From contig NW_021833064.1 of NCBI RefSeq assembly GCF_006345805.1, positions 1 through 64,000 on the forward strand: a DNA stretch of 64,000 bases, read 5' to 3'. Both the position numbers and the translations under genes were made by a program. Source of the stretch: Octopus sinensis. Lineage: Eukaryota. The number at the start of each line of letters is the position of its first letter. The first letter of the stretch is position 1. Of this stretch, positions 2,178 through 62,502 are shown piece after piece. The notes beneath the pieces are model-generated. The model was not told the DNA's origin. It ran no database searches and was given only the letters and a program-made list of their open reading frames with translations.

Positions 2178-3452
2178 CTAGCTCGGCAGCTCGCTTCGCT
2201 CACCGCGAACTAGCTCTGCGGAGGGCCTGTTCATCAAAACAACTATAAGTTATGTAGATGTATAAAACTACCTGGTTTAATGTAACCTATTCTATCTTGA
2301 ATCATAAACGATCTTTGTCGTCCGTCTTCCTTGGCATATATGAAAAAATTTTTCTCTTGCCTACCCTCGAGCATCCACATACAGCTTCCATGTGAAAAGC
2401 ACTCACTCTCTAAAAATAACCCAACTACTTTAATGACTGTCTGGCCTTGTTTAATGTCATTGCAACTTTTTTTCATTTTTGTGGTTTATTTTTTTTTATA
2501 TTTAATTTTTTCATTTCCTTTGTAATTTCCACACTCTATTCAAGGTCGTACGTCAATTGGTGGTAAATTGTGTTAATGATTGTGCTAATGTGGTTTCAAC
2601 TATCAAAGTGATTTTTCAAAATCTGTTAATTGCACACTCTATTCAAAGTCGTGCAATCTGTAATTGCACATTCTGTCAAAGTCAAATATGATAATAGCTT
2701 TAATTTTGATTCATGTCGATAATGGTATATGCATTTAATTTTAAAGAGAAAAACATAAGATGAATTGAATTTCTTTCTTGCGAATAATTAGGAGTTCATC
2801 AGTGTTAATATTCTCGCTGTCATTTTCATCAAGGATATTCTTGATACGTGAGATTTTTGCATCGAAGGTTTTAATGGACCTCATCATGAATGTCGAGGAC
2901 ATTAACGTTGTTCATTTTAATCAAATGCAGGAAATAATTTTTTGATTTTTTGGCGGGAAGGTTTCAAGGACCTCATCATGTAATTCGAGGACATCGTAGT
3001 TGTTCATTTTAACCAAAATGCAGAAAATTTTTTTTAATTTTTTTGGGGGGAAGGTTTTAAGGACCTCATCATGTAAGTCGAGGACATCGTAGTTGTTCAT
3101 TTTAACCAAAATGCAGAAAATTTTTTTTTAATTTTTTTTGGGGGAGAAGGTTTTTAAGGACATCATCATGTAAGTCGAGGACATCGTAGTTGTTCATTTT
3201 AACCAAAATGCAGAAAATTTTTTTTTAATTTTTTTTGGGGGAGAAGGTTTTTAAGGATCTCATCATGTAAGTCGAGGACATCGTAGGGTGGAAGATTCTT
3301 GGAGGAGTTCATGATTTTAAGCTTGTTCCCCATTATTGGCTAATTATAAGGGGGAAAGATTTTGACAATTTATCTGTACTTTGCCAATTTGAAGTTGGTG
3401 TGCACACACAGACAGACAGACAGATACACACCATACCATTTTATTATTAAGA
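2178..3452 (-). mobile_element. Non-autonomous Helitron with decayed Pif1-helicase remnant
   Basis: Minus strand reads A|TC (3452) to GC-rich hairpin plus CTAG|T (2178); helicase motif QGQT..KVVGLFL...CFSHG in ORF 2243-2476; (CAGA)n near the 5' end. Confidence 0.85.
2865..3286. repeat. Tandem/minisatellite repeats inside the Helitron (about 120-bp periodicity, at least 3 copies)
   Basis: Recurrent GGACCTCATCATGTAAGTCGAGGACATCGTAGTTGTTCATTTTAACCAAAATGCAGAAAATT alternating with T/G runs. Confidence 0.85.
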
Positions 3453-6059: not shown

Positions 6060-8580
6060 TAATCTGATTCAATTTCAGTACTTTTAATAAGACAAATTCT
6101 TTGAATTTCATCCTCCGATGAATACTCAGTTCTTTCGAATGATGATTTGTTTTCTTTATTATCCTGAGATTAAATTAAATTCCTCGATGAAACCGGCCAG
6201 TTTGGCATCAACACATTTGGTGACAAGTTTATACAAAGTTGGCATACACGTTATAGGGCGTAAGTCCTTCGGGGTCTCACAATCACTTTTTTTAGGGACA
6301 GTGTAAAACCAGCTATCAGGCGTGTACTCCCATAAATTATTCGGACTATCTCTTTACACAGAAACCCATGCAAAGAATCCATCTTCTTTAAGAAAAAGTT
6401 ATACGTTCCGTCACATCCGCATGCCTTCCAGTCAGATGCGTATTTAAGTATATCCATAATAAAATCACTTGTGAATTGAGGTTCACCGCCAGTACATCTC
6501 ACACTCACAAAATCATAAACTACTGGCCCCATATTTTTCTTGCTCCAGACATCTTCCTAAAATGACAAGCACTCACCATCACAAACCCATATAGGGTGGC
6601 TTCATTGCTTGAAGATAAATTTCGATAAACTCTTCTGCGGTTTAATTCAAAACACGCATTGTCTTTCCGGAAATCCTTCCTCGAGGAATGGATAGATATC
6701 TGTTTCTTTTTTATTCTAATTAGATTATTCAATAGAGCAGGCATTCTCAACCTTTTTTTGTTCATCGCCCCCTTAGACATTTTATCGCCCCCTTGTCCAC
6801 ATACAATTTAAAAATTTTTTGGCATTGTCCCTTAATTGGTTGTTTTTTGTATATATCATTTTTTCGTGAAATTATCTCTTCTGCCAAAACCAAGTCTTCT
6901 GTCTGCAAAAATGCGACTATTGCATCGTAAAGATTAACAAATCTTTCTAAAGCATTTCCTTTTGAAAGCCATCTTACTTCCATGTGTAATAAAAGTCGAA
7001 TAAAATCTTCACCAGCATCCTTACAAAACTTTCTAAAAAGACGATCATATTTGCTTCGTGTTTTTATTATGTTAATTGTTTTAATTACAATATTTAAAGA
7101 TTGATGTAAACCAGGACATATAATCTTCGATACCAGTTGATGGCAGTGTAAAATACAATGAACCGTAATGACCCATGGATAATTTTTTTTAATAAAAGAA
7201 ACAAATCCCTTATATCTTCCAACCATTGACATAGCACCATCACTCGCACAGGAAACCAAATTTTCAAATAATATTCCATTTGTTCCAAAAAACCCTTTTA
7301 CTACGGAATATATTGACATTCCAGTTGTACAGGTTTCCAATAATTCGACAAACAATAAATCCTCATTTAATACACATTCATTATCGAAATACCTAAATTT
7401 TATTAAAACTTCGAAAATAACCTCACAAATCCCATTAAAACAGCTTTACTATCTACAATGACGCTTTCATCAATTTGTAATGAAAACTTACTTCGCTTCA
7501 GTCTTTCAATAAGGATTTCCTTTACATTGTCATTCATTTCATCGATTCTTCGACGAATCGAATCATTGCTAAGAGGTAGGCTTTTAATAAGTTTAGAAGC
7601 ATCTTGATGCATTACATCCGATATTATTACTTCCAGTGATGGAATTATGCGATAGTATGAGAACTGGAATTTTTCGCAATAATTTCAGCAATTTTATAAA
7701 AAGCGATGTGCGCACCCACAACTACATATAAATAAATGTTTCGAATATTATATTAAATATATTATCGCCCCCTTGTAAAAAATTATCGCCCCCCGTTGAG
7801 AACACCTGCAATAGAGTCTCAATTCTGGTTAGCTACCCATTCTTAGACTTCTTATATCCGTAGCGGCAGATAACATCCATTGCCTTTCTTTTCTGCCTGA
7901 GGCAAGGTTAGTCTGGAGAATGAACGAACTATGTCAATTTCATCAGCTAATTTAGAGATTCTTCTTTCCGTGTTTTCCAACCATGTGCTCTGTGATCTGG
8001 CTCTTGTAGTTAAGGCCAAATAAGCACACTGTGCAGCATATAGAATATCGGTAATTTGATTAATATCTTGGGACGGATAATCTTTTGTAATATGATAAAT
8101 TGCAGAGTTTAATCCAGCCAGGATATCAGTTTTTTACCATCCTTCGCTGCACCTTTGGAGTTGGCTTTCGAGAGTCTCTCTGAATAGACTGAACCTTCCC
8201 AATTTGGAATTTGAGTTTCTCTAGACAATTTCTGAAACTGGAGATTTCTACGTCCACATCATCTTGCATTCTGCAAGAGTCGCATCTCCCCTGCACATTG
8301 TTATTCCTTCTAGCCATGCTCTTTAGTTGGCATAAACTGGAGCACTTTGCCGAGTACTTCTCATTGAATTTCTCCAAGACAAGGTTCCAACCACCTCTTG
8401 GCATCCTTCCAAGTCTTTGTTTCGCGGCAAGGGCAATCTGAGACACCCATTCGCCTTCAGAGACACCATTGACATTTCTGATAATCGCAGAAAGAGAATG
8501 TAAGTTAGTTTTGGCAGCATCACAAACAAGATCTTGTATTACAACATTAGCTCTTGTGGCATTATGAGGTCCCACAGGCG
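6060..8580 (-). mobile_element. Decayed R4/Dong-like (RT+RLE class) retrotransposon, interrupted by a hAT element
   Basis: ORFs 8126-8575, 6520-6780 and 6251-6532; ETLL|NNLIRIKK joins across the hAT; WKACGCDG..NFFLKK and DFRPITCMPTLYKLVTKC-type pre-RT motifs. Confidence 0.65.
6738..7808 (-). mobile_element. Internally deleted Buster-type hAT element
   Basis: TIRs CAGGCATTCTCAAC / GTTGAGAACACCTG; 8-bp TSD CAATAGAG (6730-6737, 7809-7816) with central TA; transposase LQIDES, SDGA.SM.G, VHCILH, EVRWLSKG. Confidence 0.92.
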
Positions 8581-8887
8581 ACGGTCCTGTCTTTTTTAAA
8601 CTATTTTAATTTGCAGGAAGGCCCATAGGTTTCGTTTTCCTTAACTGCTCAGAAACGTACATGCAGACACCACAACAACTAAATTATTAATGACGAGGTT
8701 CATAAACGAATTATTGCTCAGAACGACATTCAAACTATGAAGAACTGAAGAGTTCGATTGCCTTGGCAATTGTCTCGTGCTATCATCCGTCCTTAATTCC
8801 AGTCACTTTCTCTCTGTTCGTTACAATAAAAATTAATTGATTGACTGATACTGCTAAAACTAACTTTATTCTCTTTCCTCGATCATT

Positions 8888-9145
8888 GGAAATGTCAACG
8901 GTGTCTCTGAAGGCGAATGAGTGTCTCAGATTGCCCTTACCACGAAACAAAGACTTAGGCGACGTGGACGTTGAAATCTCCAGTTTCAAAAATTGCTTTG
9001 AGGGAACTTAAATAACAAATTAGGAATGTCCAGTCTATTCAGAGAGACTTCTAAAAGCCAACTCCAAAGGTCTAGCGAAGGATGGTCAAAACTGACATCC
9101 TGGCCGGATTAAACTCTGCAATTTATCATATTACAAAAAATAATC
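8888..9145 (+). repeat. Inverted, internally deleted copy of about 8080-8480
   Basis: GGAAATGTCAACGGTGTCTCTGAAGGCGAATG and GGATTAAACTCTGCAATTTATCATATTACAAAA match the reverse complement. Confidence 0.8.
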
Positions 9146-9199
9146 CGCTGCGGCTAGCATAATGAAAATTTCAAATTTGAACAATATTATTCAAGTCCG

Positions 9200-9996
9200 C
9201 TTGAACACTTAATTAAGAAAGATGGAAAAGGCTTCTTAGCCATTTAAAAGGGCCAACTGTCAAAAGGCCATCATATTTCAATTACAGCAACCAGAAGCAC
9301 ATCACCCCGATTCAATTCTTCTCGAAAATTGTTCCCCGTCCGTTCCGCACTTGCGTTGGGTCCAGAGTCGAACATCAAGAAAATCTGGAAAGACCTTCAG
9401 GATTGTTGGAATCACCTAATTAATTACTCTAATTAACTGTTGGTGATTCTTGGGTTAAATACAAATAATCCAATCATGCATTTTCAGACAGTGCACTTCC
9501 TGTTATCTTCGATGGTCAACGGTGAGTGGGTAAAAACCATTAAAGTAAGCGTTCATTCTTTTGGGAAATTACTATGGTGCTCGTTTCTACATAAATTTTA
9601 TAAAAATCTCCAGTGTGAGTAAGACACCTGCTTTATATTGGATTATTTTTAAGGAGTATCATCCAAAAAATGATATTTGTGTGGCCTAATTTATCTGTCA
9701 GGTTCGGGGGACTAGATAATATTCTACCTGAACTAATAAAGTACGCGCAAATGAAGCTTGCTAGAACCATTGCAAACATCCTGAACAAAGAATTTGACCA
9801 GAATAGCCTATTAGACCTCGGCAAAGGATGGTTAATTCCACTAAAGAAACCCGGAAAAAAGAGAGAAACCATACCCAACTTAAGACCTATTAGCCTAGTA
9901 TCGACGCTTCGGATAATACTCTCAATGGTTGCATTAGAAAGAATAAGAACTAAGATGGCCAATTTTCTTTCAACTGGTGAAATGGGTCAAAACTGA
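9200..9996 (+). pseudogene. RTE-like LINE fragment (pre-RT region)
   Basis: GLDNILPELIKY, LIPLKKPGK, NLRPISLVSTLR in ORF 9670-9996. Confidence 0.7.
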
Positions 9997-10815
9997 CAGT
10001 TACATACATTTTTTTAAATCTGCTTTATATGGGAAGTACAAATAATTGATTTGACTCAAAGTATATTTAAGGAGTATCATTCGAAAAATGATATTTGTAT
10101 GGCATAATTAGTACAATAATTGATTTCTGAAATATAAATTTAGTAAACTAATAAATATTAGATACGTGCCAAAAATCGAGTTATTTTACAACTGTCTGTA
10201 AATTATAGTTCACTTACATAATTGTCTAGAAATACTACAATTTTTTTCTTGATTATAATCAATTCCATAATTTTGTGTACAAGAATTATTGCAGATGCTT
10301 ATTGATTATATTATTAGTCAATTATAAATTTCAATGTATTCTCTAAAAGAAGTGATTTTAGTCAAAAACTCAAAAAATCAATCTACTAAACTACTAACTC
10401 AATTCGAGCAGATGCAATATAATTACTTATATAATTAAAAAAATGACTTGTTATGATTGCCATGATTTTGAAAATGAACTTAAGTGATTAACCCAGTTGG
10501 TACTATTTGCTGTCAAACAGCCCGATTGAAAGACTCCTGTTAAAAACTGTATTTTCAGTGGTTAGATAAAATCATACTTTGGTTTTAACTTGGTATTGAG
10601 TGATACATAAGAGTAGGTTGGATGGTTTGCACTAGGAGTCGGAAATGACTTGTTTTTATTAAACTCAAATATATTTTATTGTATTTGCTAATCCGACTGC
10701 ATCCCCTGCGGCGTCGCTAAAAACCGTATCAAAGAGCGACTTTCAGCGTAGACACCGCTCTAAATTCCATTATAATTAGCGTAGTTATCATAATGTTTTT
10801 AGTTGCTGTCCCCGC

Positions 10816-11899
10816 ATGGAAGATCAACTGAAATGTACCAAATGTAAAGAAGTAATTTATACAAAAAACCCACATTTGCGTCTTATGGACTCATTTTATC
10901 ACACTAACTGTCTTCAGTGTTCTGTGTGTTCTCAAGTACTCACTGACGTTTGTTACGTGAGGGACGAGATTTACTGTTTTAACGACTATACAATGTTTTA
11001 TTAAAATCTTAGTTTGTAGGAACTTTAAGTTTTGTCCGTTGTGTAACGTCCAAATTGAACTAAATACATTGGTGTATACCATCAAGTCACATATGTATCA
11101 TGTTGAATGCCTCAAGTGTCGGTGTTGTAATAAAGAACTCAAAACTGGGGACTTCTTTTCCTATGCTGATAAATCCACACTTTACTGCATGGACTATTGT
11201 CACAAAAATATATGTTTGGTAATCGAGTTATTTTTAGTAAAAACTGAAAACACTGCGGAATCAGAAAGAAAATCAAAGTCTCCTAAATATTGTTCGGAAG
11301 CGAATGGGAGTCCTGAAAAGCCTGAATCAATTAGTGAGGAAGTTCAAACTAAGCTTGTAGCCAACAATAACCTCCAAAGATGCAAACAGCGAGGACGGAG
11401 GAACATCTATCAAACCACACCAAATTGGGCTTCTTACAGAATTGTACGAAAATGAAAAAAAGCCATCGCGTCATACATTGGAAGAAATGACCAAATTGAC
11501 TGGACTGCCAATTCGCGTCATCCAAGTCAGGATGGGGGTCTCTAGTGTTAGGTCTGGTTTCAAAACAGGAGGTCCAAGGAACGGAGAAACAACCCGAGCA
11601 ACTCTAGCCTCCTACCTTCCAATCCACCTCCCAGTAATACAGAATTTGGGGTCTACAAACATCAGTTTAATCAAAGGCCACAAATCCTCCAGAATAACAG
11701 ATCTGGAAATAATTTTTTTTCGTCATTTGTGACAGATTATCAACATTATGGGCATTATCGAAACGAATCTTACCCAGAAAATATGCTGAGGAAGCCAATA
11801 AATCCAATGCTGTTTCCTCCCTCAATGCATTTCCAAACTCCTGATCAGACATCCCAGTACTATCCCAATATGAATGTCTACAGAAATCTTAATTTTTGA
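10816..11899 (+). CDS. Lhx1/5: LIM-homeobox transcription factor, Lhx1/5 (Lim1)-like
   Basis: Two LIM domains (CTKC..HTNCLQCSVC..CFND; CPLC..HVECLKCRCC..CMD) and homeodomain TSIKPHQ..KPSRH..TGLPIRVIQ|VWFQNRRSKERR; introns 10995-11019 (25 nt) and 11526-11551 (26 nt), probably also 11214-11237 (24 nt); apparent +1 frameshift near 11402. Confidence 0.85.
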
Positions 11900-12559
11900 C
11901 ATTCTGCTAGTCTAATAAATGTAGTTGTTTAAAATGTTCAGATTGCACTTTGTCTAAGGTTTAGTTTAAGAATTGTCGACCGAAATGGTTCTCATTTCTC
12001 TCCTACTTTCCTAAACTTCCAAACAGTGATTTCGAAATACGCTTCTTCCAGGAGATCAAAAATAATCTTCTTTCCAGGAGTTTTTTTTAGAGATTAAGGC
12101 GTGATCTGCTAATGAATTCCAAGAGATTTTATTTGATTTCCTCCGTGGTAATAACATAAGTTGCTTCCTCAACAAGTATTTTATTGACTGTTTAATTAAG
12201 TACATAGACAAGTCTGAAATCATAAGTGACAATCAAAAACTCATCAAAACGACCAATCTCGGCGTCTTTGGCTAGCCCCCAAAATCTGGAAACTTAATGA
12301 ATTTTTTGTATTAAAAACTAGAAATTGACAAGAAATAAAGTTATCTTTTGTCACAGTCCGATAAAGAAACAGGCCGTTAATGAAACGCCAACATCAAATT
12401 GACAAAAAATCATATCGAAAAAAAGATAAATTAATACAAATCGTCATTGGAAATGAATAATTAGTTATAAATGTGCCCGTCCATAGAATGGACACGCCGT
12501 TAAATGGACACTAGGTGATTTGAATAGGGTAACAAGCTAAAGTAAAAAAATATATTTAT

Positions 12560-13004
12560 AAAATGATTTTAAATTTTAACATAATTTAAAATTAAAATTG
12601 AAATAACTTAAATTTTCCATTGAATCCCATAAAATAATTTATAAGTAGACCTTAATAGAAAAAGTAAAATCAATGAATACTGAACGCTAATTTGGTTTAG
12701 GTTGTGAAGGGGGTAATAATTTGACAGATCTCATTGCTATTTCTCGTTTCAATCTCTAAAATTAAGTCTTCTAATCACAAATGAACTGTGCAGACAGGCT
12801 TGCTCCTTCAGAAGATTCTTGTTTTGACATTTTAATACAATATGAAGCATTTAGAATTTTTTTTCATTATTCTAAAATATCAATTATTAATTTTAAAATA
12901 TTATTTTTATTTATGAAATCGGTTTTAAAGCACATTCTGCTTTGGCATCGATTTTAATTTTTGTAATTGAATATATTTAAACGCAAATACCAGCTCAGGT
13001 ATTT
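12560..13004 (+). repeat. Internal repeat segment with a diverged second copy at about 54630-55074
   Basis: Collinear match, e.g. GAACTGTGCAGACAGGCTTGCTCCTTCAGAAGATTCTTGTTTTGACATTTT in both copies. Confidence 0.9.
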
Positions 13005-14253
13005 TGGAGTATTTTGCATTGTGCCATCCAGCCCCAGCCTAATTCCTACCATCAGTCGAATAATGGAAAGGGTAATGTTTGAACGACTCTCTGAACACGT
13101 CGAGAGAAATGGTTATCTCAAAGACGTGCAGTGGGGCTTTCGGAGGGGTCGTTCCTGTGCTGACTGTCTTTATACACTCAATTCGTCGATTGTAAAGGCT
13201 CTGGATTTCAAAGAGTGTCTGACAATTGTGTCTCTAGACATCTCAAAAGCCTTTGATATGGTTTGGCACCTCGGTCTCCTTAGACATCTGGCGAAGTGTC
13301 ACATAGACAAAGGACTATTCCTATGGCTAAAAGACTTCCTCCGCGACAGGCGCTCTGTGATAAGCTTTCTGAACTATGACTCGGATGAACTGAAACTTAA
13401 AAGAGGCGTCCCTCAAGGATCAGTCCTCAGTCCTCTATTATTCAACATTGTGATGAGCAATCTGCCGTCTCCTGTCAACACACGGACGGAAATTTTGATA
13501 TACGCCGATGATGTTGTAATCCTTGACATTTCATCGAAACCTGCCTTATCCGAACAAAGGATTATATCATATATGAATACAGTGGAGCAATGGTGCGATG
13601 AAAATATGTTCATTATTGCGCGTGAGAAGTCCGCATTACTGAGAATCACAGAAAGCAGAAATTTAATAAATTTACCGTGCCTGATCAAGAACATACCTCG
13701 ACAAAACTCAATTAAATATCTTGGCTTGTTCATCGATGAAAAGGGAAACTATCTCGAAAACGCAAAATTAAGTAAAAGGAAAGCAACTAATGCTCTGTTC
13801 TGCCTGAGGAAGTTAAATTTGGAGCCTGATACTTTCCTCTACGTTTTCAATACGGTGATCCTACCGGGACTACTATACGGAAAAGAGGGATGGTACTTCT
13901 CTAAAAAGAAGGACACCATCTTAACTAAATTTGAAAAGTCTCGCAGGCTCGCTTTGAAGCTTGCTTACCACCAAAAAGTTGAAGATCCAATCCCCCTGTG
14001 GCTTGAAAGTAAATCCTCCATGGTCGGTGAAACTGTCGAAAAAGCTATAAGTGGTTATAAATCCAACTCAATTGTCACTGGGACGTACCTGCAGAGGTAG
14101 AAAAGAAAAAAAAAAAAAAAAAAAAAAAAAATTTACTTGAGGGGGTCTCTTTTTTTTTCTGGGAAGAAGTCGATAGGGTAGTCCTATTGTTTCATTATAC
14201 AAACTCCCCCCTAACCTTTAACCCTTCTCTGTTTCCAATAAAACTTCCTATTC
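13005..14253 (+). mobile_element. 5'-truncated Jockey/I-group LINE (RT to 3' end)
   Basis: RT motifs LDISKAFD, GVPQGSVLSP, YADD; stop at 14100 followed by an A-run, AATAAA and a CCTATT tail; TSD CTCAGGTATTT (12994-13004, 14254-14264). Confidence 0.9.
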
Positions 14254-14268
14254 CTCAGGTATTTGTCA

Positions 14269-16799
14269 CCCATTTTGACATTTCATCGAAACAATCGACG
14301 TCCTTCTGGAAAAAGGGTGGGTAACAATCGGAGGGATGTACTCAAAATCCCTTTCCAATTACTCATCGCTTATCAAGGACTTTTTTGCCGATAAACACAA
14401 TCATTTGTCAATACTCCTCGGGGATCTAAATGCCAAATGCACATCTTTTGGCTGTCTGAGAACCAACAGGGATGGCATCATTCTTAAGAAGCTTTCAGAA
14501 TCTCTCAGTTTCTCGGTCATCACATCAAAAACCCCAAATCATTACTCACCAGGAGGGTGGGACTATTTGGGCGTAGCATTGGTCTCTATGTCTACTCTTC
14601 AATTTATGGAACAACCGTACACCTTAAATGATATTGGAAGTGACCATCTACCAATTTTATACAAACTCAACCTTGGACCTTTAAAGGGTAAACCAACTTT
14701 TATACGATATAACCTCTCGACTATAAACTGGGAACACTACCGAAAATGTTTTACACTTTATCTGAGCAATTTCGCTCCTAAACTTGACGAAAATCTTCAT
14801 CTGAGGACCTCGAGAAGTCTAGCAATTCCCTTATTGGATACATAAAGTCTTATCTGGAAACATATTCTACAAAAATCGTCTCAAACAATAGGAAAACTCA
14901 CATGCCAAACATGAATGTTGAAATCCTACTAAGGAAAAAACAATGTCTAAGGAACAAACTCCGGCGCTGCGCAGATTTTCGTGACCGGTCCGTTTTGGAA
15001 AGTGAAATCTTCACCATTACGGAAGAAATAAGAAAATCGGCGAAGGTGGCGAAGGATAAAAAATGGAATACTGAGTGCAAAAAGCTACATAAAGGAAGTC
15101 CAAATTTTTGGAAGGTCTACTCGAAATTAACCTCGACGTCTGAGAAAACTATACCTAAACTGCTAAAACAAGATGGATCCCCTGCATCTCATGAAGAAAT
15201 CCCGAACATATTTGCTGATAGTCTCAAAAGAATACAAGAAGTCAATCCGGATACAAATCTATCTGATTCAGCTTTGTTTGATATGGAAAAAGAGTTGGAA
15301 GACAATCTTAGCTCATTACCAATGTGCTCGGAATCTATAACGTGCAAAGACGTGGAAAATGCAGTTAGATACTCCAAAAATAACGCTCCGGGAAAGGACA
15401 AGATAACCATGCGCATGTTCAAAGAAGCTCCCAAGCAACTTTACGAATATTTGGGATGTCTCTTCTCCCGCAGTGTGAGCTTGGGATACGTCCCTTCTTC
15501 ATGGAAACTGACGGAGGTAAGGATGATACGGAAGCCTGGAAAACCTGGTTACTTGGCGACAAGTTATAGGCCTATAAGCCTAATTCCTACCATCAGTCGA
15601 ATAATGGAAAGGGTAATGTTTGAACGACTCTCTGAACACGTCGAGAGAAATGGTTATCTCAAAGACGTGCAGTGGGGCTTTCGGAGGGGTCGTTCCTGTG
15701 CTGACTGTCTTTATACACTCAATTCGTCGATTGTAAAGGCTCTGGATTTCAAAGAGTGTCTGACAATTGTGTCTCTAGACATCTCAAAAGCCTTTGATAT
15801 GGTTTGGCACCTCGGTCTCCTTAGACATCTGGCGAAGTGTCACATAGACAAAGGACTATTCCTATGGCTAAAAGACTTCCTCCGCGACAGGCGCTCTGTG
15901 ATAAGCTTTCTGAACTATGACTCGGATGAACTGAAACTTAAAAGAGGCGTCCCTCAAGGATCAGTCCTCAGTCCTCTATTATTCAACATTGTGATGAGCA
16001 ATCTGCCGTCTCCTGTCAACACACGGACGGAAATTTTGATATACGCCGATGATGTTGTAATCCTTGACATTTCATCGAAACCTGCCTTATCCGAACAAAG
16101 GATTATATCATATATGAATACAGTGGAGCAATGGTGCGATGAAAATATGTTCATTATTGCGCGTGAGAAGTCCGCATTACTGAGAATCACAGAAAGCAGA
16201 AATTTAATAAATTTACCGTGCCTGATCAAGAACATACCTCGACAAAACTCAATTAAATATCTTGGCTTGTTCATCGATGAAAAGGGAAACTATCTCGAAA
16301 ACGCAAAATTAAGTAAAAGAAAGCAACTAATGCTCTGTTCTGCCTGAGGAAGTTAAATTTGGAGCCTGATACTTTCCTCTACGTTTTCAATACGGTGATC
16401 CTACCGGGACTACTATACGGAAAAGAGGGATGGTACTTCTCTAAAAAGAAGGATACCATCTTAACTAAATTTGAAAAGTCTCGCAGGCTCGCTTTGAAGC
16501 TTGCTTACCACCAAAAAGTTGAAGATCCAATCCCCCTGTGGCTTGAAAGTAAATCCTCCATGGTCGGTGAAACTGTCGAAAAAGCTATAAGTGGTTATAA
16601 ATCCAACTCAATTGTCACTGGGACGTACCTGCAGAGGTAGATAAGAAAAAAAAAAAAAAAAAAAAAAAAAAATTTACTTGAGGGGGTCTCTTTTTTTTTC
16701 TGGGAAGAAGTCGATAGGGTAGTCCTATTGTTTCATTATACAAACTCCCCCCTAACCTTTAACCCTTCTCTGTTTCCAATAAAACTTCCTATTCCTATT
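14269..16799 (+). mobile_element. Longer copy of the same LINE (APE C-half + RT), with frameshifts
   Basis: ORFs 14336-14845 (GDLNAK, GSDHLP), 14902-16347 and 16359-16640; 15577-16796 nearly identical to 13036-14255; flanked by AGGTATTTGTCA (14257-14268, 16800-16811). Confidence 0.9.
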
Positions 16800-17298
16800 A
16801 GGTATTTGTCAATTTATAAATTTTTTATTGACAAAATCAATTTTTTTTCTAATTTGATGTTGGCGTTTCATTAACGGCGTGTTTCATAAACGGACTGTGA
16901 CATCTTTTGATAAAAAAGAAATTTAATTTAACTAAAATTAGGCACGTTTATTAATTTCTCTTTTGTTACTTTGATGTTTGCACACTTTTTATAGCTAGAT
17001 AAAAATATATGTTGTACCTTCCGCAATGGAAGATCCCAATTGGCTTAATGAAGACTTTCTAGTCATTAATTAATTTTCTACAGTAGCTAGCATTAAATCT
17101 ATTTCAGGATATATAATAAATTAACGACACATGTGACATAACTTGGGGTAAATATTTTCGAGTATTCTCCAAGCTAAAATATAAACCCGAACAGTTTCCG
17201 CACCTTCGCCTGCAGCACTCTCGCCTATTCCACCCAAAAGTTGGTCATGGGACGATCATATGATGGATTCAAGTTGGGAATGCTCCTTTACCATATGA

Positions 17299-26761: not shown

Positions 26762-29700
26762 CAGTACGACCCCGGTTTGGGGCAGACCCCATGGGTGGGG
26801 CACCCTCGGGTTTTGGGGCACCCCCGCTTTTAGGGGCAGTTTTTGAAAACAGTAAATTTTTCATTCTATTATTTATTTTTGATGACCCCGGTTTGGGGCA
26901 CTTATTTAATTACAAAATGTTAGTTTATTTATTAATTATTAATTAATACTATTATTTCACGTGTTTATTTTGACTTTAGTATGGTTCGTAAAAAGAATTC
27001 AAAGATTAATTATGAAACAAAAATTAAAATCGCTAAAGATATAAAACATGGTCAATTTTCAGAAAGAGATCTTGCTAAAAAGTATAAAACGAGCAAAGGT
27101 ATCTTTTTTAACTAATTATTAATTACAGGTACTATTTCTCGCATTAAACAAAATTTTGTTTATTATTTTGACGCGGGATTAACTGAATCCGATAGAATCA
27201 AGGAATCACATGATCCAAATAATGAATTAGATGATAGATTAGTTTTTGAAACTTTTCTACGTCTGAGATAAATTGGAGCATATTGTTCGAAAAATTCCAT
27301 GTTCAAATGATACCGTCAATAGAAGAATACGAGATCTATCCGAAAACATAAAAGAACAAGTTATTTTCTGGTTAATTATTATTAGGTCATTACTGAAATA
27401 AAAAGTGCTGCCTTTAAAAAATTTTCAATTCAATTGGATGAATCAACAGATGTAGCAAATTGCTCTCAGTTACTCGTTTATGTGCGATATATTTATATGG
27501 AAAATATTAAGGAAGAATTTTTGTTCAACTATTCCTTACCTTTAAACACAAAAGGTTCTGATATTTTCGATGCAGTTAATTGTTTTTTTGAAACAGAAGG
27601 TACATTTTTGATTTTTTACTTATGATAGGCCTATTGTGGCAAAATCTTAGTGCATGCACCACAGATGGAGCACCAGCTATGCTTGGATGTAACTCTGGTT
27701 TCCGAGGTAGAGTACAATCTGTCAATCCAAATGTAAAACATCTTCACTGTATGTTGCATCGTTATGTTCTTGCTGTGAAGACAATGCCTCTTGAACTTAA
27801 AAATGTTCTTGACGATGTTATTAAAATTGTCAATCATATCAAAAAAAGTCCTTTAAATTCGCGAATTTTTTATTCAATTTGTGAAGAATTTGGTTCAGAT
27901 GAGAAGGTTTTACTATATCACACAGAAGTTCGATGGTTATCCAAAGGAAATGTTCTTTCCAGAGGCACAGTTGAAGAATGAAATTATGAAATATTTCTTC
28001 GCGAAAATAAAAATTTATATTTATCAAAGTTATCAAATATGTATTGGGGTGTAATGCTATCTTATTTAACGGACATTTTTTCGCGAATTAATGCTTTGAA
28101 TTTATCGGTACAAACTAAGGGAGTTACCATTGTTGACTTTTTAGAAAAAACAAGGTTTTTTACGAAATATGCAATATTGTAGGTCTTTTCGTATGAAGCT
28201 CCAACTGTGGATAGATAATACAACAAATTCTAATTTTACTATGTTTGATAAGTTGAATGAAAACATTTTCCATCTAAAATTAAATGAAATAGAAAATTTA
28301 AAACATCAAATAACTTCCCATTTACTTGGATTGAAGAATGAAATTGAAAAATATATACCTGAAATTAATGAAGTAGATCTTAAGTTTTTGTCAATCCTTT
28401 TTCCGAAAAGTTAATGTTTTGCCTTCAAATATTCAAGAAGAAGTTATTGAATTAATAAATTCTTACGAGTCAAAATCTTATTTGAATCTGCACCATTAAT
28501 TGAATTTTGGTGTAAAATGACATCAAAATATCACAATATTGGATTTTATATAATCGATTTTTGCTTTTGTTTCCGACTACATATCTCTGCGAACAAGGAT
28601 TTTCATCGTTGTTTAATTTAAAATCAGTTCATCGTGCGAGGCTGAATGTTGTTCATGATATTCGGGTGTGTCTTTCGTCAAAGGATCCAGAAATCGATAG
28701 ATTAGTGATTGATAAACAACACCATCCATCTCATTAATTAAATATTTTTTTTCCTTAATTTTTTAAAAATCGATAAGGGGTACGCGAAAAATTATTTAGA
28801 TGGCAAGGGGTACGCAAGGAAAAAAAGTTTGAGAACCACTGATTTAAGGCATCAAATGGATGGCTAGACCGGTTCAAGAAAAGACACGAGTTGCTATTAA
28901 AACTATAAGTGGAGAAAAGAATTCATCTGACCTTTCTACGGTTTCCAATTTTTTTGCTGATTATGACAACTGTTTGGAAACTGTAGGAAGTGAAAATATT
29001 TTTAACTGTGATGAAACAGCTTTATACATAAAGCGAACGCCGTCGCGTCGAAATTTTGTTCAATTTAATGACAAATGCAATGGAATTAAAATGAGCAAAG
29101 AGAAAGTTACCCTTCTCCTTTGTTGTAATGCACTTGTGTGAAAAGTTAAAACCTCTATTAATTGGAAAATTCAAATCTCCTAGGTGTTTAAAAAATTTTA
29201 ACGCTGAGGATCACGGAGTACTATATGCTGCATCAAAAAATTCGTGGATGACTAGTGATATTTTTGGGAATGGTTATGGAAAGTAAATCAAGATATGATC
29301 AATGAAAAGAGAAAAATTGTCTTAATACTGGATAATGCGAGCTGTCACAGAAATACAGAATATTCCAATGGTTTATTTACTTTTTCTTCCCAAAAATACG
29401 ACCGCTTTAATTCAACCCCTAGAGAGGGGAATAATAAATCCTTCAAGTCCCTCTATTTCAATAAACTGATTGATTTTACTCTTATATTTGAAAAAGAACA
29501 GCTTTCTGATTTGAATTTGAATATGTCAATCTTAGACAAGTCATTACAGTTGTCGGGGAGGCATGGAAAATGATGTCAGAGACAACGATAATTAATTGCT
29601 GGCAGAAAATAAATGAAAACAGATCAAAAATTTCGGATAATGTACAGTTGGACGAAGAATTAATAGATGACGTGATTTCAGATGTTATTTCAATGGATTC

Positions 29701-31289: not shown

Positions 31290-34200
31290 TCCTCTTTCCC
31301 GTCTACGCTTTGGGCGTCCCGATACAGCAACAAAGGGATGGGCAATCCCTTGCTAAAGTTTTGAAAGCGCAGATCGGTGAATTCATGTCCAATTTCGAGT
31401 CCGTCCTCTGCCCCCCTACCGAAGGGACGCACAAAGTTGAAAGAAGGCCTTCAAAGGCATCTGAGGCCGAAAGGATACGGCGGCTGGTACGGACAGAACT
31501 CATGGAAGGGGACGTAAAGGCCGCTGTACGCACCATATCCTCTGACCTGGGCACCCTTCCATACAGCACTGCTACTATTTCCGCATTGAAGGCGAAACAT
31601 CCCAGCGCCCCTGAAGATTTTCGTGAATTCCACCTCCCTAATGTCATGCCACTAGTAGCCTCGGCCGAAGACGTCTCCGATAGCCTGAAATCCTTCCGCC
31701 GCAGCAGCTCTGGCGGTGTGGATGGCCTAAGGCCTGGGCATGTTCGTGATTTGATATGCCGGCTCTCAGGGGAAAACAATACTACCTTGCTCGAAAAGAT
31801 CGTCGAACTCTCTAACAAGATTCTGTCCGGCGACTTACATAATATGTCACATGGGCGACTATGTCGCTATGGGCAGCCAGTCCTTTTACGTGTTCTATGG
31901 AACCGCAGAAAAGGTATTAAATTTGAATATAGCAATTATATATGGAAGAGTGTAGATTAATCAAATTCTAATTTAAAATTACATTTGAATTATCTTTTAA
32001 AAATGGCTTACCCAAAAGTATATTAATTTTAACAGCGTGTTACTCACACTTTGTGATGTCAGGGTTTAAGGGTTACGTCAGAAATATTAACGAATACAAT
32101 CAAATTAAGGAAGCGTTAATCGGGATATTCCCGGAGGATATGAATGTTCGAAGCAAACACCGGTTGGCCAAAAAGGCTTCCAATTTTTGTCAAAAATGTC
32201 TGAAGAATCGTCAGCAGAAACATCATTTAATTTCGAGTTAGGGTTAGATTTTGAATATATTTATGTTGTCACTTGCCAACGTTAGGGTTAAGGTTAGGGT
32301 TAGATTTTGAATATATTTATGTGGTCACTTGCCAACGTTAGGGTTTGGGTTAAGGTTAAAGTTGTTACAAACTTTGCAAAAAATTTGATGTAAATTATAA
32401 TTTGCTAATGTTGCAATTTATATTATCAAAAATAATTCACATTATAATTTGCTAATGTTGTAAATAATTGTACTATTTTAAAGCAAGCATGGTTCAAATA
32501 TAAAACATCATTTTCTCAAAAATTTAAAGTTCAATCATTAGTTCGGATCGTTTGCATTTATATTAGTTGGCCTGTTAGTAAATATTTGCTATGTAGTTGC
32601 CATGGAAACACGTAAAGGCCAGCATAATAAGTTACTAAAGCGTCCCAAATATTAATAATTTTTAAAAAAATCATATATTTAATAACATTTACAAATGAAA
32701 AATTTTGTTCGTTTTTTATTTTGGTTCAGATTACACTTTTGCCGTAAAAAGGCGGTAAATATATTTTTTGCACAAATAAAAATATTAGTTATTGTTTATA
32801 TATTGCTAAAATTCTATTTAGATATTTTTTTTGATTCGTTTCTTGGAAATTTTAGGAAAAATGTAGTGTTCGTTTTTTATTTTGGTTTACTGTATGCTCT
32901 TTTGCCCGTGAACTGATCTTCTCCTCATGTTTGACGGCCTTAAAGAAGGCGGATGGCGGAGTTCGCCCCATTGCTGTCGGAAACATTTTCCGAAGGATTG
33001 CTTCCAAGATAGCAAGCAAGGCAGGCTCTGGGGAACTTCTATCGTACTTCGTATCAACACAGCTCGAAGTTGGTGTCCGAGGAGGCGCTGAGGCCGGGGT
33101 TCACGTTCTACGTGAGTTTGTTTTTTCTTCCACGGATTCCCAACGAATTCTGGCCAAGATCGACTTAAAGAATGCATTCAATTCTGTTAGAAGAGACTGT
33201 ATTCTTGAAGCTTGCGCCAAAGAAATTCCATACATCCTACCGATTGTCAATTTGGCATACTCCAAGCCTTCCGCGCTTGTATTCGGAACAACAATACTTG
33301 ATTCTGCCAATGGAGTTCAACAAGGTGACCCTCTAGGTCCTCTTTTATGCTCCCTCGCGATTCACCAAACAACGAGATCGTGTAAAAATGATCTTAACAT
33401 GTGGTATTTGGATGATGGAGTAATTGGAGGAACCCCCGAAGGCATCTTGGAAACGCTGAAGTCTCTTGTTTTTAATTTTGGAGCGCTTGGGCTTGAATTC
33501 AATTGCGGCAAGTGCGAAATTGTGAATGTCAACACGGACGAACTTTCCTTTCGTAAGTGAATGACCGAATTCGACAAACTGCTACCTGGATGCACCTTCC
33601 CCCTCAAAGAAGACTTGATTTTTCTTGGATCTCCTATTTTTGAAAGTGGTATCAAAGCTGTTATGAAGGCTAAAATTTCGGAATTTTCCCTTCTCTCTGA
33701 AAAATTACGGTTGTGTGAATAGCACATTGGGCTCTTTTAATGAGGAACTGTCTATCAATTCCGAAGTTAACATACGTTTTGAGGACGGTCCAATGCTATC
33801 AGGAAACAGATCTTCTCGAAGACTATTCCGAGCATATGAGAGCTTGCACTGAGGACATCCTCAACGTTAGCTTCGATACGCAGTCGTGGAGACAGGCGAC
33901 TCTTCCAATTTCCCTGGGAGGGATCGGCTTGATCACCCCGGCAGATTCAGCGCACGGCGCATATTTTTCCTTAGTACTCTCGTCCAGAGATATGATCGAC
34001 ACTGTTCTTTCTCAAATAAACGAACAGAGGAAATCATTTGCTGTGGATGATTTCGTCGCCGTATGGGAAAAGCTGGGATTGCCATTGCCATCTGATGTGA
34101 CCTGCCAATCGGAGTGGACGTCGAAAGTCCACGCCAATACGTTTTCATGGCTAACGGAAACCATGGACCAGAAAAGGTTGGCTTGTTTACAAGCGGGCAG

Positions 34201-34863
34201 CCAGCCCCTAAGCGGCGCGTGGCTAAACTGTTACCCTTGTAGTACAACTGGCTGCCTTCTTAATGATGAAGCCGTAAAAATTGGAGTTTGTCTGCGCCTC
34301 GGTCTACGCGTTTATGCACAACACCAATGCCGGTGCGGCGTGTGGACTGACGAGCTTGGATATCACTCCCTCTCATGTCGAAACGGAATTGGACGTTCCT
34401 CATGGCATTCCGAACTGAACCAGATCATCTGTCGATCTCTTCGAACTGCTGGATTCCACACACAATTGGAACCTGCAGGGATTTTCGTAGAGGATGGCAG
34501 AAGACCCGATGGGATGACCACATTTCCATTCCAGAGGGGAAAGTGTCTGGTTTGGGACGTCACGTGTGTGAACTCCTTTTCCAATCAGAATATCAAATTA
34601 TACATCGAGAATCCTGGAGCCCCGTCTGAACGGGCTGAGAAGAGAAAAGCTGAGAAATACGCTGGAATTGGGAATGGGAGAGTGTTTGTCCCCCTGACTG
34701 TTGAGACGTCAGGAATACAGGGGCCTTCTACTCGGACCCTACTCCAGCGCATTGCCTCATTAATCGAAAGGGTTACCGGCGACCCGTGTGAGCACCGGTA
34801 TTTAATCGAAAGAATATTTATAGCCATAGTCAGAGGCAATACTCTGGCTATCCGCCAATGACT
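31290..34863 (+). mobile_element. CRE-like retrotransposon (RT+RLE), 5'-truncated, split by a 1055-bp insertion
   Basis: ORFs 31310-31960, 32931-33560 and 33740-34861: GGVRPIAVG, DLKNAFNSV, GVQQGDPLGP, WYLDDG, CRCG, RPDG, WDVT. Confidence 0.92.
31838..32892. mobile_element. Non-autonomous insertion with TA duplication and TTAGGG-like motifs
   Basis: Removing it plus one TA restores GDLCSFARELIFSS; right end GGTTTACTG|TA is Tc1/pogo-like; two copies of a roughly 50-bp unit containing GTTAGGGTT at about 32238-32345. Confidence 0.7.
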
Positions 34864-34999
34864 ATTTCTCTTTTGATTTGAAATATATAATCAAAAAAAG
34901 ATAAACAAATTAAAATAATTACTAAAATTAAAATAATCATTTTTTTATTATATATTAAATGACAATTACATTGGTTAGCCATTATTTATTAATTTTTTA

Positions 35000-36470
35000 A
35001 TAACGTGCGTATCAACGTGCTTATGGGTAAATCAGTTCGTCGTTCTTATAAAAATTCTTATTTGTCATTTGGATTTATATGCAATGATAAAAATTAACTA
35101 CCTCAATGTTTAATTTGCATGGAAGTCTTGGCAAATGATGCTATGGTTCCTAGCAAACTAAGGAGACATTTTACTTCCAAGCATCCGGACTATTCCGAAA
35201 AATCTGTTGATTATTTTATCCATTTGAAAAATGTTCATACCTGAAAAATGTTCATACCTGATGAAACTTTTGTGAACACAAAGGAATCATTAAAATGTTC
35301 AAACTTTACAAATTTGTTACCTTATACCGAAATTTGATGGCTATCAAGGGGTAAATCATTAACGAGGGTTTTTGAATTAAAGGACGAAATGTATGAGTTT
35401 TTTTAAATTGGAGGGGCATTCTGAATTTGTTGAAAAAATTCAGAATCCAATTTTGTCCTTAAAAACTTGCGTATTTATCTGACATTTTACAAATATTAAA
35501 TGAGGTTAATGCAAGTATGCAGATAGACGTTCTGAGACTATTTTATCGTCGACGGACAAATTAAATTCTTTGAAAATGAAAATCAGTTTTTGGAGAAAAA
35601 GGGTTTTAGATAACGATTATAGTATGTTTCCTAATACAAATGGTTAATTTTATATTTTAATTATAATAAAAATATAATGATGATTCGATACAGGAACTAA
35701 TTAATGAACATTTAATAATTTTGGAAAACAAAATGGATGCTTATTTTCTAGACTCCTTGGCTGAAGACTAAGCTATGGATTTGGACGGTCTGAGTTCGAT
35801 TCCGAAGGAGGCCGGTTTTCATCCTGGGGCTAATTCTCGTTATCGTTCCCCTGCCCCTGAGGCAACGAGTACTTCTGGCACGACACAGTTGGAAATGGGG
35901 ATCTCTTTACCTTCCGGGCTTAGCGTGGCGTTACGGGGTCCACCATGTCAGTTGGAAATTCCTTCGGATATGGCAACGCTCAGGAGGCACTTAATGCCTA
36001 CCTAAAAAGGACTCTTAGCTTCTCAGACCCTGGGACATCGTCGTCTCAGGCCGATCTTGCGGGAAGGATTGAACCTTTCAGAAGGATCTCCCTCGTTTGG
36101 ATCGGCGATCACGGGAATAACTATAATTAACTGGCTTTGCCCGTGTTTGGTCTTTAAATAATAAATAAATAATAAATAAGACTTAAAAATTGAAAAATTC
36201 GATTGGGTTATTAGTTTTTTAATATATTTAAAATACGAAATCCTTTTCTTGTCCCTGAATCAAAAAACTTGTCTATTAAAGAAAAGAACTTATTTCGCTA
36301 TTTAATGATCGATCCTTAAGATTATAGATGACGGAGTTAGACATTGGAGAATTCTGGATATATATTCAAAACATATATCCCAGTTTATCAAAACAAGCAC
36401 TGACCCTAATTTTACAGTTTTCAACGACCTATTTATGCGAAGCAGGTTTTGAAATACATTTTTTAGATTT
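35000..36470 (+). pseudogene. Decayed hAT transposase remnant, interrupted by a SINE
   Basis: Same remnant as 980-1703, continuing to DW.IRNPF and the dimerization motif FWI..YPSLSKQAL..FSTTYLCEAGF. Confidence 0.75.
35751..36179 (+). mobile_element. tRNA-derived SINE (copy of 1704-2125)
   Basis: Near-identical to 1704-2125. Confidence 0.85.
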
Positions 36471-37581: not shown

Positions 37582-38160
37582 ATGGGGCAGCACTCTCACA
37601 AATACAACAGCCATCGATCAAGTCGCAAGAAATACTCTCAATCTAAAGCCGATGGAAGCAAGGTGAATAATGATTATAGTTTAATGGACCTTAACCAAGA
37701 AGTCCACCTCGTCTCATTCTACGCAAGAGACCGGAAGGAAATGTTAAGACAGACTTTTAGGTCACTCAGTGAATCTGAGTTGGCACACATAATTCCCCCC
37801 TGTTTGCAGGTACATGTCACTCCCCCACTACAGGACATGACCACTGACCAAATAAGGCACACTGCACTCAAGGAGGCTAAGAAAATATCGAGATCTAATC
37901 TTAAACGAATAGCCAAAGGTCGCTCTCCTGCCTCAGGTTTAGGCAAGTCTTTGAAGCAGTCCAAATCCAAGAGAGACCCATCTGCCGAGGATTTGCCTCA
38001 GTTGGATAAGGGGGAGTGTGAGGAAGCAACTGAACTTGAATTCCGAGCCAAGGCCATAAAGGCACTCTTAAAGGCCCAGTCAAAGGGAAGGACTCGGCCG
38101 ACTTCCAACACTTTATTGGAAGAAGACTCGGAGATATTCGACTTGACTGGTCTGCCTTAA
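37582..38160 (+). CDS. CAAP1: CAAP1-like protein (caspase activity and apoptosis inhibitor 1 family)
   Basis: VSFYARDRKEMLRQTF..IIPPCLQ|DMTTDQIR and C-terminal ELEFRAKAIKALLKA resemble the recalled CAAP1 motifs; probable in-frame 24-nt intron 37810-37833. Confidence 0.7.
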   Translation: MGQHSHKYNSHRSSRKKYSQSKADGSKVNNDYSLMDLNQEVHLVSFYARDRKEMLRQTFRSLSESELAHIIPPCLQVHVTPPLQDMTTDQIRHTALKEAKKISRSNLKRIAKGRSPASGLGKSLKQSKSKRDPSAEDLPQLDKGECEEATELEFRAKAIKALLKAQSKGRTRPTSNTLLEEDSEIFDLTGLP

Positions 38161-40889: not shown

Positions 40890-41770
40890 TAAGCTAATTA
40901 ATGGCCTCACGAGACACCCGGCCAGCCTCGCGAATGGCGAAGCCGTTCCCTCGGATCACAGCAATCGACAGACGTTTCAGTGGCTTGTCCTTGAAATCCG
41001 TCGACCGAGCGAGCGAAGGAAGCGGAGTGTCTTGGGGCCGAAGATACCGGAGGACTCCACGGCAATTGGAGTAAAGAACAGCGAGTTGGAGAGGTGGCTG
41101 TACTTGAGAATCTTTCGGTCCTCGGCCTGCCTCGAAGCGTGCCCAGGACAGAGCAAGATTTCCCAGCGAGAACGTGTCCGAACAGGTAGAATCCCAAATA
41201 AGGGATTTCCCCTGCTTGTATGGGAAGGTGGACATGCCGTCTGGGCATTTGTCATCCCCTCTATCCAGTCCAACAGGTTCAAGGATTGACGGGACGCCAG
41301 CTGAAGCGAGGGCTTTCTGTATGATCGAGTTGAGTTCACTGTGACGGGGGGCACGACCGGCACTCCGACGGCAAGCAAGAGGGTGCAAAGCGTACTTGTC
41401 AACAGTTCCCCCCCCCCAGCGGAATTTGTGCGTCTGGCAGATTTTCAGCCCGACACGGAGGGAAATTACGATTCTTAGGCATTCCTTGTCCACCAGGTTC
41501 CCGATGGAAGGGAGAGGGAGAGCCTTTAACCAGACACCGCTGCCTTCGCAGCGACCAGCACGGAGGCAAGCGACACGGTGTTGATTGGAGACAGGAAGGA
41601 GGCCTTCGAAAATTGCCTGACAAGAGATTTCGTCCCATTGACGATGTACAGATTGAGAATTGGGCAGCTTCGAACCAAACCGAGCCTCCCACCGATCACG
41701 GGCTGCAGAGTAATCTTCAGACAATTTCCGTTCGGGGAGGTTTCTAAGAACGATGTCTGAGAGAGTACGA
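40890..41770 (-). mobile_element. CRE-like 3' portion
   Basis: ORF 40894-41724: LACRRSAGRAPRH, PDGMSTFP, WDSTC, IAVIRGN. Confidence 0.85.
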
Positions 41771-42515: not shown

Positions 42516-42900
42516 TCATGGACGGGAAGCCGACGCGATCGAGAAAGAATTAGAGCGTACTATCGCAAGTGATATCCGCTCGAAAAACCATCTTGATTCG
42601 CGGGCGTCGCATGTGATAGCAGACATGCGGGACCCGATCTCCTGAACGAAGCTGATTGTCTTACCACCCAAGGAACCGGAAGTCTCAACCGCGAATGGAA
42701 GGAATTGGAACTTCTCCGTAAGTGAGGAGTACTTCCGCATCTTTTTGCATTCCGCGGTTGTGACAATAGATCCAGGGGCGGATGCGGACATCAGCAGGTT
42801 CTGAGGCGAGAAAGAGTCCACACACGTGGCATCCCAGGTAAGAGGCTTCCCCCTGTTGAAGGGAAACACAGTGATCCCGTCAGGCCTTTTTCCGTCCCCC
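42516..42900 (-). mobile_element. CRE-like RLE 3' fragment
   Basis: RPDG..FPF, WDATC, KMRKY, PFAVETSG, ISLAIVRSN. Confidence 0.85.
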
Positions 42901-44705: not shown

Positions 44706-44771
44706 GTTGTTTCAAAGAATTTAACGATCCACTCATCACAACAACGTATCTTTGGCCCCGGGTTTTTGTTA

Positions 44772-62388: not shown

Positions 62389-62502
62389 AAAGTATTCTTT
62401 GAGCTTTTCCACTTACCCTTGCTAGCATCTAATTTTGTTCCTTAATATGTTTCTGTTTTTAATTTTTAATTAAAAAATAAAGAAAAATGAAAATTGTAAA
62501 AA

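Follow-up and report, generated by a model that had tools for sequence, protein, structure and literature searches.

Three retrotransposon insertions share one short site in a 64,000-nucleotide stretch of Octopus sinensis DNA (assembly GCF_006345805.1, contig NW_021833064.1, positions 1 to 64,000 of the forward strand; hereafter the window). The elements concerned are long interspersed nuclear elements (LINEs) with an apurinic/apyrimidinic-type endonuclease (APE) and a reverse transcriptase (RT). We consider it probable that this recently active octopus lineage integrates preferentially, perhaps specifically, at that one site. The best reading of the data as analysed here would be a strong target preference, similar to the behaviour of Tx1L in Tx1D.

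Both copies of an AT-rich module of approximately 490 bp are broken inside the same 4 bp of a palindrome, by three insertions of the type produced by target-primed reverse transcription (TPRT). Independent copies were found at the same position of the same target in three cases out of three, in two diverged host copies. The sample comprises three insertions and three host loci. Two of the loci belong to the window and the third to the O. sinensis contigs used for comparison; two of the three module loci hold insertions (three events in total).

Three insertions in one palindrome

Module copy A occupies 12553-13004 on the forward strand and continues at 16812-16840, and copy B is found at 54626-55074 and 55506-55540. 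The two are approximately 93% identical, and copy A is approximately 94% identical to the O. sinensis copies. Copy A is interrupted by two LINE copies in tandem. LINE1 spans 13005-14253 and is flanked by the target-site duplication (TSD) CTCAGGTATTT at 12994-13004 and 14254-14264. LINE2 spans 14269-16799, with the TSD AGGTATTTGTCA at 14257-14268 and 16800-16811, where the module resumes and runs to approximately 16840. Copy B is interrupted by a different insert of 420 bp, insert 3 (55075-55494), with the TSD CCTGGGTATTT at 55064-55074 and 55495-55505. All three insertions have the same orientation relative to the module. The TSDs have lengths of 11, 12 and 11 bp for LINE1, LINE2 and insert 3, respectively, and those of LINE1 and insert 3 could be 9-11 bp because of microhomology between tail and target.

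A first-pass annotation of the window had described a two-copy repeat ending in a hairpin and resuming after an insertion, with tandem LINEs at 13 kb and another insert at 55 kb, each with its own TSD. The coordinates of all these features hold. A small correction concerns the 5' end of LINE1, where the first 31 nt (13005-13035) are not homologous to the LINE.

Furthermore, the annotation had noted that each TSD matches the variant bases of the copy in which it lies, so that the insertions would be later than the divergence of the two copies, and our inspection bears this out: the TSDs contain CTCAGG in copy A and CCTGGG in copy B. The TSD boundaries are not the same in the three events, nor are the lengths, 5' ends and tails of the inserts. 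The hallmarks of TPRT are present, namely identical LINE 3' ends, 5' ends at different positions, and TSDs. The three insertions are independent and later than the divergence of the host copies.

The probability that two further insertions would land by chance at most 3 bp from the homologous position, counting both copies, is about (14/64000)^2, or approximately 5e-8, by simple arithmetic assuming uniform insertion within the 64-kb window only. The re-use of the site is real and far beyond chance.

The arrangement of LINE1 and LINE2 fits two successive target-primed insertions, in either order. Between them lies a 15-bp remnant of the target, CTCAGGTATTTGTCA (14254-14268, +), in which the right TSD copy of LINE1 (14254-14264) overlaps the left TSD copy of LINE2 (14257-14268). 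A template jump within a single event was considered as the origin of the tandem and is ruled out by this remnant, which separates the copies and has exact TSD logic. In one order, with LINE1 arriving first, the LINE1 tail had already taken the place of the left arm of the site when LINE2 inserted; in the other, LINE1 entered a site without anything 3' of GTCA. None of the sequence differences between LINE1 and LINE2 is informative on the order. Because the TSD regenerates the site, the LINE can re-enter it and build head-to-tail tandems.

It could be argued that the insertions are not independent, a single ancestral insertion having been multiplied through duplication or gene conversion, or that the assembly is chimeric. 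LINE1 and LINE2 are nearly identical and adjacent, a situation where assemblers can err, and the single-base indels of LINE2 resemble long-read errors. The differing TSD boundaries and the host-specific bases within the TSDs speak against this explanation, as do the differences among the inserts in length, 5' end and number of tail repeats (insert 3 differs also in sequence) and the exact TSD logic of the 15-bp remnant. In addition, the transposon that carries copy A is absent at the matching O. sinensis locus, and its LINEs are therefore lineage-specific. We regard this explanation as highly improbable.

Host transposons and the choice of the site

The module is carried by two elements, MITE-A and MITE-B, and the host repeat is a genuine miniature inverted-repeat transposable element (MITE), that is, a non-autonomous DNA transposon with terminal inverted repeats (TIRs). 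This agrees with the first-pass annotation, which had called it a DNA transposon; the TIRs, a TSD and empty sites recovered from O. sinensis now support the call. MITE-A (12350-16901, +) includes the two nested LINEs. Its TIRs of approximately 60 nt begin with GTCACAGTCCG and form a 61-nt inverted repeat at 12349-12409 and 16842-16902 that is 89% complementary, and they are flanked by the 7-bp TSD ATCTTTT at 12343-12349 and 16902-16908. We identify MITE-A as a TIR transposon because of these TIRs, the 7-bp TSD and an empty site in O. sinensis contigs. MITE-B (54411-55578, +) holds copy B between 29-nt TIRs (ATATTATGTCGCGAGCGCAGCG..) that are 93% complementary; its identification is based on the TIRs and on a copy of approximately 620 bp, 97.9% identical to that of the window, elsewhere in O. 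sinensis. The termini of the two MITEs are unrelated and the internal sequences flanking the module are different, the module being common to both. It ends just inside the right TIR in both MITEs (12553-16840 in MITE-A, 54626-55540 in MITE-B).

The window copy of MITE-B contains an extra 131 bp (54495-54625) between the left terminal region and the module, with ATTTA on each side. These 131 bp are either a small nested insertion in the window copy or a deletion in the O. sinensis copy.

The empty site of MITE-A was located next to a compact LIM-homeobox gene at 10816-11900 (+), which encodes two LIM domains and a homeodomain and has introns of a few tens of bases. The protein is 75% and 67% identical to two O. 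sinensis proteins and belongs to a small O. sinensis family of short genes described as 'Lhx1/Lhx5-like'. Counterparts of the gene are found in three O. sinensis contigs, L010 (9605-11249), L011 (5290-6932) and L012 (9615-11235). The window region is approximately 94% identical to L010 and L011 and approximately 84-88% identical to L012, and the segments are either orthologous or paralogous. The alignment of window positions 9643-12350 to L010 and L011 (approximately 94% identity) stops at the left end of MITE-A, and both contigs run through gttATCTTTTgataaaaaa uninterrupted. MITE-A and its two LINEs are therefore absent at that O. sinensis locus.

The MITE-B copy of approximately 620 bp lies elsewhere on the same contigs (L010 7408-8027, L011 3079-3697). 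In this copy the target is uninterrupted, CCAAATACCAGCCTGGGTATTTGTCAATTTATAG, and matches the reconstructed pre-integration site. Since it is uninterrupted, the right-hand 36 bp belong to the host repeat, and the possibility that they are a flank transduced by the LINE is ruled out. Two further candidates were discarded: a module-like stretch at 23.06-23.23 kb is too divergent to be judged as an empty site, and Rfam and tRNA scans ruled out that the target is a known RNA gene.

Between the target palindrome and the right edge of the module lie approximately 36 bp. In copy A it is AAATACCAGCTCAGGTATTT (12985-13004, +), read directly as AAATACC-AGCTCA-GGTATTT, with the wider form CAAATACC-AGCTCA-GGTATTTG. 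In copy B it is AAATACAAGCCTGGGTATTT (55055-55074, +), or AAATAC-AAGCCTGG-GTATTT, with the wider form CAAATAC-AAGCCTGG-GTATTTG, and the left TSD copy of insert 3 lies inside it. Written out, the target is CAAATACCAG/CCTGGGTATTT^GTCA. The host sequence resumes after the insertions with GGTATTTGTCAATTTATA, at 16801 and 55499; this string has no other exact match in the 64 kb, where 0.26 occurrences are expected by chance when up to 3 mismatches are allowed.

From the junctions, the bottom strand is nicked at or no more than 3 nt from the palindrome centre and the top strand 9-12 nt downstream, giving TSDs of 9-12 bp. The extent of 5' truncation varies from copy to copy, and the 5' junctions are untidy. 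The pre-integration form of the site, as preserved in the O. sinensis copy, is a near-perfect palindrome. The bottom-strand nick of insert 3 and LINE1 falls at or next to its centre, and the top strand is cut one base short of the end of the right arm. We propose that the endonuclease of the LINE itself would pick the site, as in R1, TRAS/SART and Tx1L, and that insert 3 would be mobilised through its homologous 3' end. Base pairing between tail and target was considered as an explanation of the site and rejected, the microhomology being only 0-3 nt.

Of 8 bases at the nick site, 4 differ between copies A and B, compared to approximately 7% elsewhere in the module. The octamers are AGCTCAGG at 12991-12998 and AGCCTGGG at 55061-55068 and at approximately 7924-7931 of L010. 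This excess divergence could have been left behind by repeated nicking and repair, or be due to chance.

The first-pass annotation had proposed that this LINE subfamily recognises the hairpin. Here the re-use of one site stands, whereas recognition of the hairpin as a structure does not follow. As single-stranded DNA the palindromes fold weakly (-5.7 to -6.8 kcal/mol, z -1.3 to -2.3; copy A has -6.8 kcal/mol and z -2.25), and the tandem means that a half-altered site was entered. Structure recognition is kept alive, as a possibility, by the geometry with a nick at the centre.

Structure could also act without any aiming by the LINE. The palindrome would then extrude, breathe or be nicked by the host or a transposase, any active LINE would use the nick or the distorted DNA, and the focal lineage would be found there as the one active now. 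The positions of both nicks in the pre-integration form, at the dyad centre and near the end of the right arm, agree with such a hotspot, as does the excess of differing bases at the nick site, and LINE endonucleases are sensitive to DNA structure (PMC1950540). On the other hand, the fold is weak, and the three insertions have the same orientation despite a symmetric stem (p=0.25 by chance, weak evidence). Furthermore, the two further LINE families of this lineage that the window contains are inserted elsewhere, and LINE2, if it came second, entered a site without the left arm. On balance we find a hotspot of this kind unlikely.

Alternatively, the preference could be moderate only, the endonuclease favouring a short motif such as GGTATTT or an AT-rich flank, with repeated insertions resulting from a very abundant module. 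MITEs make up 11.9% of the O. sinensis genome according to the supplement of PMC10294476, the module is dense in our sample (two copies in 64 kb and one in the O. sinensis contigs), and the sister families choose AT-rich sites. Against this, the 490-bp module was hit three times out of three inside a span of 4 bp, and RGGTATTTGTCA has no exact occurrence in the window except at the insertion junctions. A preference of this looser kind seems quite improbable.

Several points weigh against a strong, LINE-encoded target preference as well. Only three insertions and three host loci were seen. All copies seen are 5'-truncated, LINE2 has frame breaks, and of the endonuclease of this family the window contains no more than the C-terminal half. 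The nick positions vary by 1-3 nt between events, which is looser than in R1 or R2. Finally, the focal lineage may be the sole currently active one, which would confound the contrast with the sister families.

The focal LINE, its sister families and known target-specific elements

Judged by its coding content, the focal element is an APE-type LINE, or non-long-terminal-repeat retrotransposon. LINE2 (14269-16799, +) is 5'-truncated and contains the C-terminal half of the APE domain and the whole RT (Pfam Exo_endo_phos_2, E=6e-11; RVT_1, E=1e-39). In the translations the catalytic motifs GDLN, SDH and YADD can be recognised. A Pfam search of the 120 aa downstream of the RT found no RNase H domain. 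LINE2 has two frame breaks, which could be real or long-read indel errors. LINE1, also 5'-truncated, is homologous to LINE2 only from 13036 onwards; its LINE sequence (13036-14253, +) encodes the C-terminal two thirds of the RT (RVT_1, E=7e-35) and the end of open reading frame (ORF) 2, followed by a 3' untranslated region (UTR) with an A-run. Over 1.2 kb the two copies are 99.7% identical. The differences are a substitution, a 1-bp indel, a few changes beside the stop codon, an A-run of unequal length and an additional CCTATT unit. Their 3' ends read ...CTGTTTCCAATAAAACTT followed by CCTATT repeats, LINE1 ending with AATAAAACTT and CCTATT(C) and LINE2 with AATAAAACTT and (CCTATT)2.

Insert 3 (55075-55494, +) consists of tandem repeats of 16/33 bp (55086-55332) and a further stretch of approximately 150 bp, and ends with AATAAAACTTT and (CCATT)2. 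Its last 45 nt or so are clearly homologous to the 3' UTR of LINE1 and LINE2, and the last 110 nt or so more loosely. The (CCTATT)n and (CCATT)n tails follow homologous 3' ends, and the claim of the first-pass annotation that one LINE lineage is behind both was correct. Within the window insert 3 has no match other than itself, and the O. sinensis loci gave none. From its sequence it would be either a non-autonomous partner of the LINE or a truncated member of a sister subfamily.

The 31 nt at the 5' junction of LINE1 (13005-13035, +) begin with TGGAGTAT, and no source for this segment was found in the window. The first bases past the left TSD are TGGAGTAT in LINE1 (13005-13012) and AGAGTAT in insert 3 (55075-55081), GAGTAT being common to both. 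This could be a shared 5' terminus of the family transcripts, or chance; if it is a common 5' terminus, LINE1 would be an internally deleted copy. At the 5' end of LINE2, an 18-nt stretch (TTGACATTTCATCGAAAC, 14275-14292) is an exact copy of an internal RT segment (13523-13540 and 16064-16081), and may be a scar of template switching at the 5' junction or a true internal similarity.

Two sister families are represented in the window, both on the reverse strand and both at different targets. LINE-51 (51209-53754) has the tail (ATTC)3 and the TSD ATAAATTTTTATT; the first-pass annotation had noted that related LINEs with other tails, such as the one at 51.2 kb, do not use the site. A copy in O. 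sinensis has the TSD TAAAAAATTAA, also at an unrelated site. Amino acid identity between LINE-51 and the focal LINE is 42% over the RT and 38% over the endonuclease half. LINE-56 (56323-58005) is internally deleted and has 41% amino acid identity to the focal LINE in the C-terminal region. Its 3' end, AATAAAACTT followed by (GTCTT)3, has the AATAAAACTT motif in common with the focal LINE, and its TSD is CATGCAGA. The sister families insert elsewhere and not at the palindrome.

The window holds no ORF1 of the focal family, and the ORF1 features come from the sister LINE-56. Three zinc knuckles can be read by eye in the translation of LINE-56 ORF1, and Pfam gives one weak zf-CCHC match (E 6e-4; 20.2 bits versus a curated cut-off of 20.8). 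A knuckle-bearing ORF1 is known from I-superfamily elements. Between the 5' end of LINE-51 and MITE-B lies an ORF of 164 aa (53798-54292, -) without a Pfam match, which by eye resembles the PD-(D/E)xK-like C-terminal regions of some retroelement proteins.

In a search of the PDB, the ORF2 of the sister family matched human L1 ORF2p (E 1.4e-17) and R2 (E 3e-19), and a PDB search with the endonuclease half did not reach the R1Bm and TRAS1 endonucleases (EN). The best matches of the RT in protein databases are insect proteins, one of them named after a jockey-group element by its source. An affiliation with L1/Tx1 appears unlikely, because the RT of the sister family is no closer to L1 ORF2p than to R2 and the ORF1 of the sister copy has zinc knuckles. 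A Jockey/I-like clade is plausible.

Against a collection of 5.8 billion proteins the focal RT found nothing closer than 39% identity, so that LINE ORFs of the source genome are absent from it. In viral contigs the LINE 3' end and the target gave no more than chance matches, of which seven were one phage sequence. In metagenome contigs neither the LINE 3' end nor the module had a match, and the module had none in prokaryote genome contigs.

Octopus genomes are rich in LINEs and MITEs (PMC10294476). The same source (Martelossi et al. 2023) places 16 O. sinensis LINEs in an unclassified clade of the I superfamily, sister to I-LOA-R1 and Tad1. The focal family may belong to this 'unknown I clade', which we offer as a lead only. 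The clade is octopus-specific and without a reference sequence, and the focal family is likewise octopus-restricted as far as seen. No target specificity is reported in PMC10294476, whereas the focal family re-uses one site.

Reported target-specific LINEs belong mostly to clades with a restriction-like endonuclease; among APE elements they are concentrated in the R1 and Tx1 clades (PMC4640811). It has been shown that the EN sets target specificity in R1Bm, TRAS1, SART1 and Tx1L (PMC1919474). Furthermore, insertion of Tx1L in Tx1D and tandem insertions of site-specific elements are established precedents (PMC1919474, PMC4640811).

The closest behaviour is that of Tx1L in Tx1D of Xenopus laevis (Tx1 group, L1 clade), where an APE LINE occupies a defined site in a non-autonomous TIR DNA transposon. 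Composite elements result, with the endonuclease as determinant (PMC1919474, PMC4640811), and composites are found here too. The octopus case differs in having a mollusc as host, a short tandem repeat as tail and a short palindrome as target. It also differs in the RT, no closer to L1 ORF2p than to R2, and in the zinc-knuckle ORF1 of the sister copy.

Members of the R1 clade (R1 in 28S rDNA, TRAS/SART in telomeric repeats, Waldo and Mino in microsatellites) have APE and RT with no RNase H detected, as here, and a gag-like ORF1 with zinc knuckles, which in the octopus is seen in the sister copy. Their specificity is EN-determined, with defined nicks and a fixed TSD of approximately 10-14 bp, compared to octopus TSDs of 9-12 bp with a nick wobble of 1-3 nt. 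The targets of the R1 clade are multicopy host genes or simple repeats, whereas the target of the octopus LINE is another transposon; moreover, the R1 clade is essentially arthropod and the octopus element molluscan. Keno and Utopia, in U2 snRNA genes, have a multicopy 'safe' target and occasional tandems at the same site (PMC4640811), as in the octopus. Their targets are RNA genes and Utopia has a restriction-like endonuclease, in contrast to the APE and the MITE target of the octopus LINE.

A wider reading is conceivable. The focal family would be part of the octopus-restricted, unclassified I-superfamily clade and would have acquired its specificity independently of R1 and Tx1. Its endonuclease would read the structure of the palindrome and nick at the dyad centre and at the base of the right arm, so that the TSD equals one arm. 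The LINE, insert 3 as its non-autonomous partner and the two MITE families would form a nested parasite system in which the module serves as a multicopy safe harbour. Taken as a whole, this combination is distinctly unlikely.

The octopus LINE probably aims at its target, a behaviour known in a few other LINE groups, and the case is seen in a small sample. If true, this would be a third, mollusc-specific origin of target aiming and would show how readily an APE domain can be retuned. Nesting into MITEs would be one way for the LINE to stay active at low host cost. An endonuclease that chooses a site of approximately 15-25 bp is possible material for programmable, RNA-templated insertion. To our knowledge, Tx1L and Tx1D are the only well-studied pair of a LINE in a DNA transposon, and the octopus elements would be a second.

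Other features of the window

The window contains further LINE copies with an RT, a C-terminal cysteine motif and, by eye, a PD-(D/E)xK-like endonuclease region, at 26-2000, 34060-36035, 31310-34861, 40894-41724, 42516-42869 and 44381-44860. Two stretches of approximately 2 kb among them, 34 kb apart, are mostly 97-100% identical. These elements may be of the R4/Dong/Hero type reported for octopus. An unrelated LINE fragment at 45060-47664 (-) contains a putative endonuclease (by eye, no Pfam match) and pieces of an RT, and is bracketed by a 63-nt inverted repeat (45060-45122 and 47602-47664) that is 95% complementary.

Two ORF fragments, at 6762-7355 (-) and 27622-27981 (+), have the motif (E)VRWLSKGN in common; by eye they resemble the C-terminal part of hAT-type transposases, and they have no Pfam match. 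A protein search with an ORF of 192 aa at 37582-38160 gave no match. A foldback-like structure at 8074-9147 consists of nested inverted repeats, with arms of 60-89 nt that are 85-93% complementary, around an ORF of 149 aa without a family match. Tandem repeats are present at 2843-3286 (five units of 92-97 bp) and 60086-60321 (two units of 118 bp), and a tRNA-Gly(TCC) gene is located at 62502-62574 (-).

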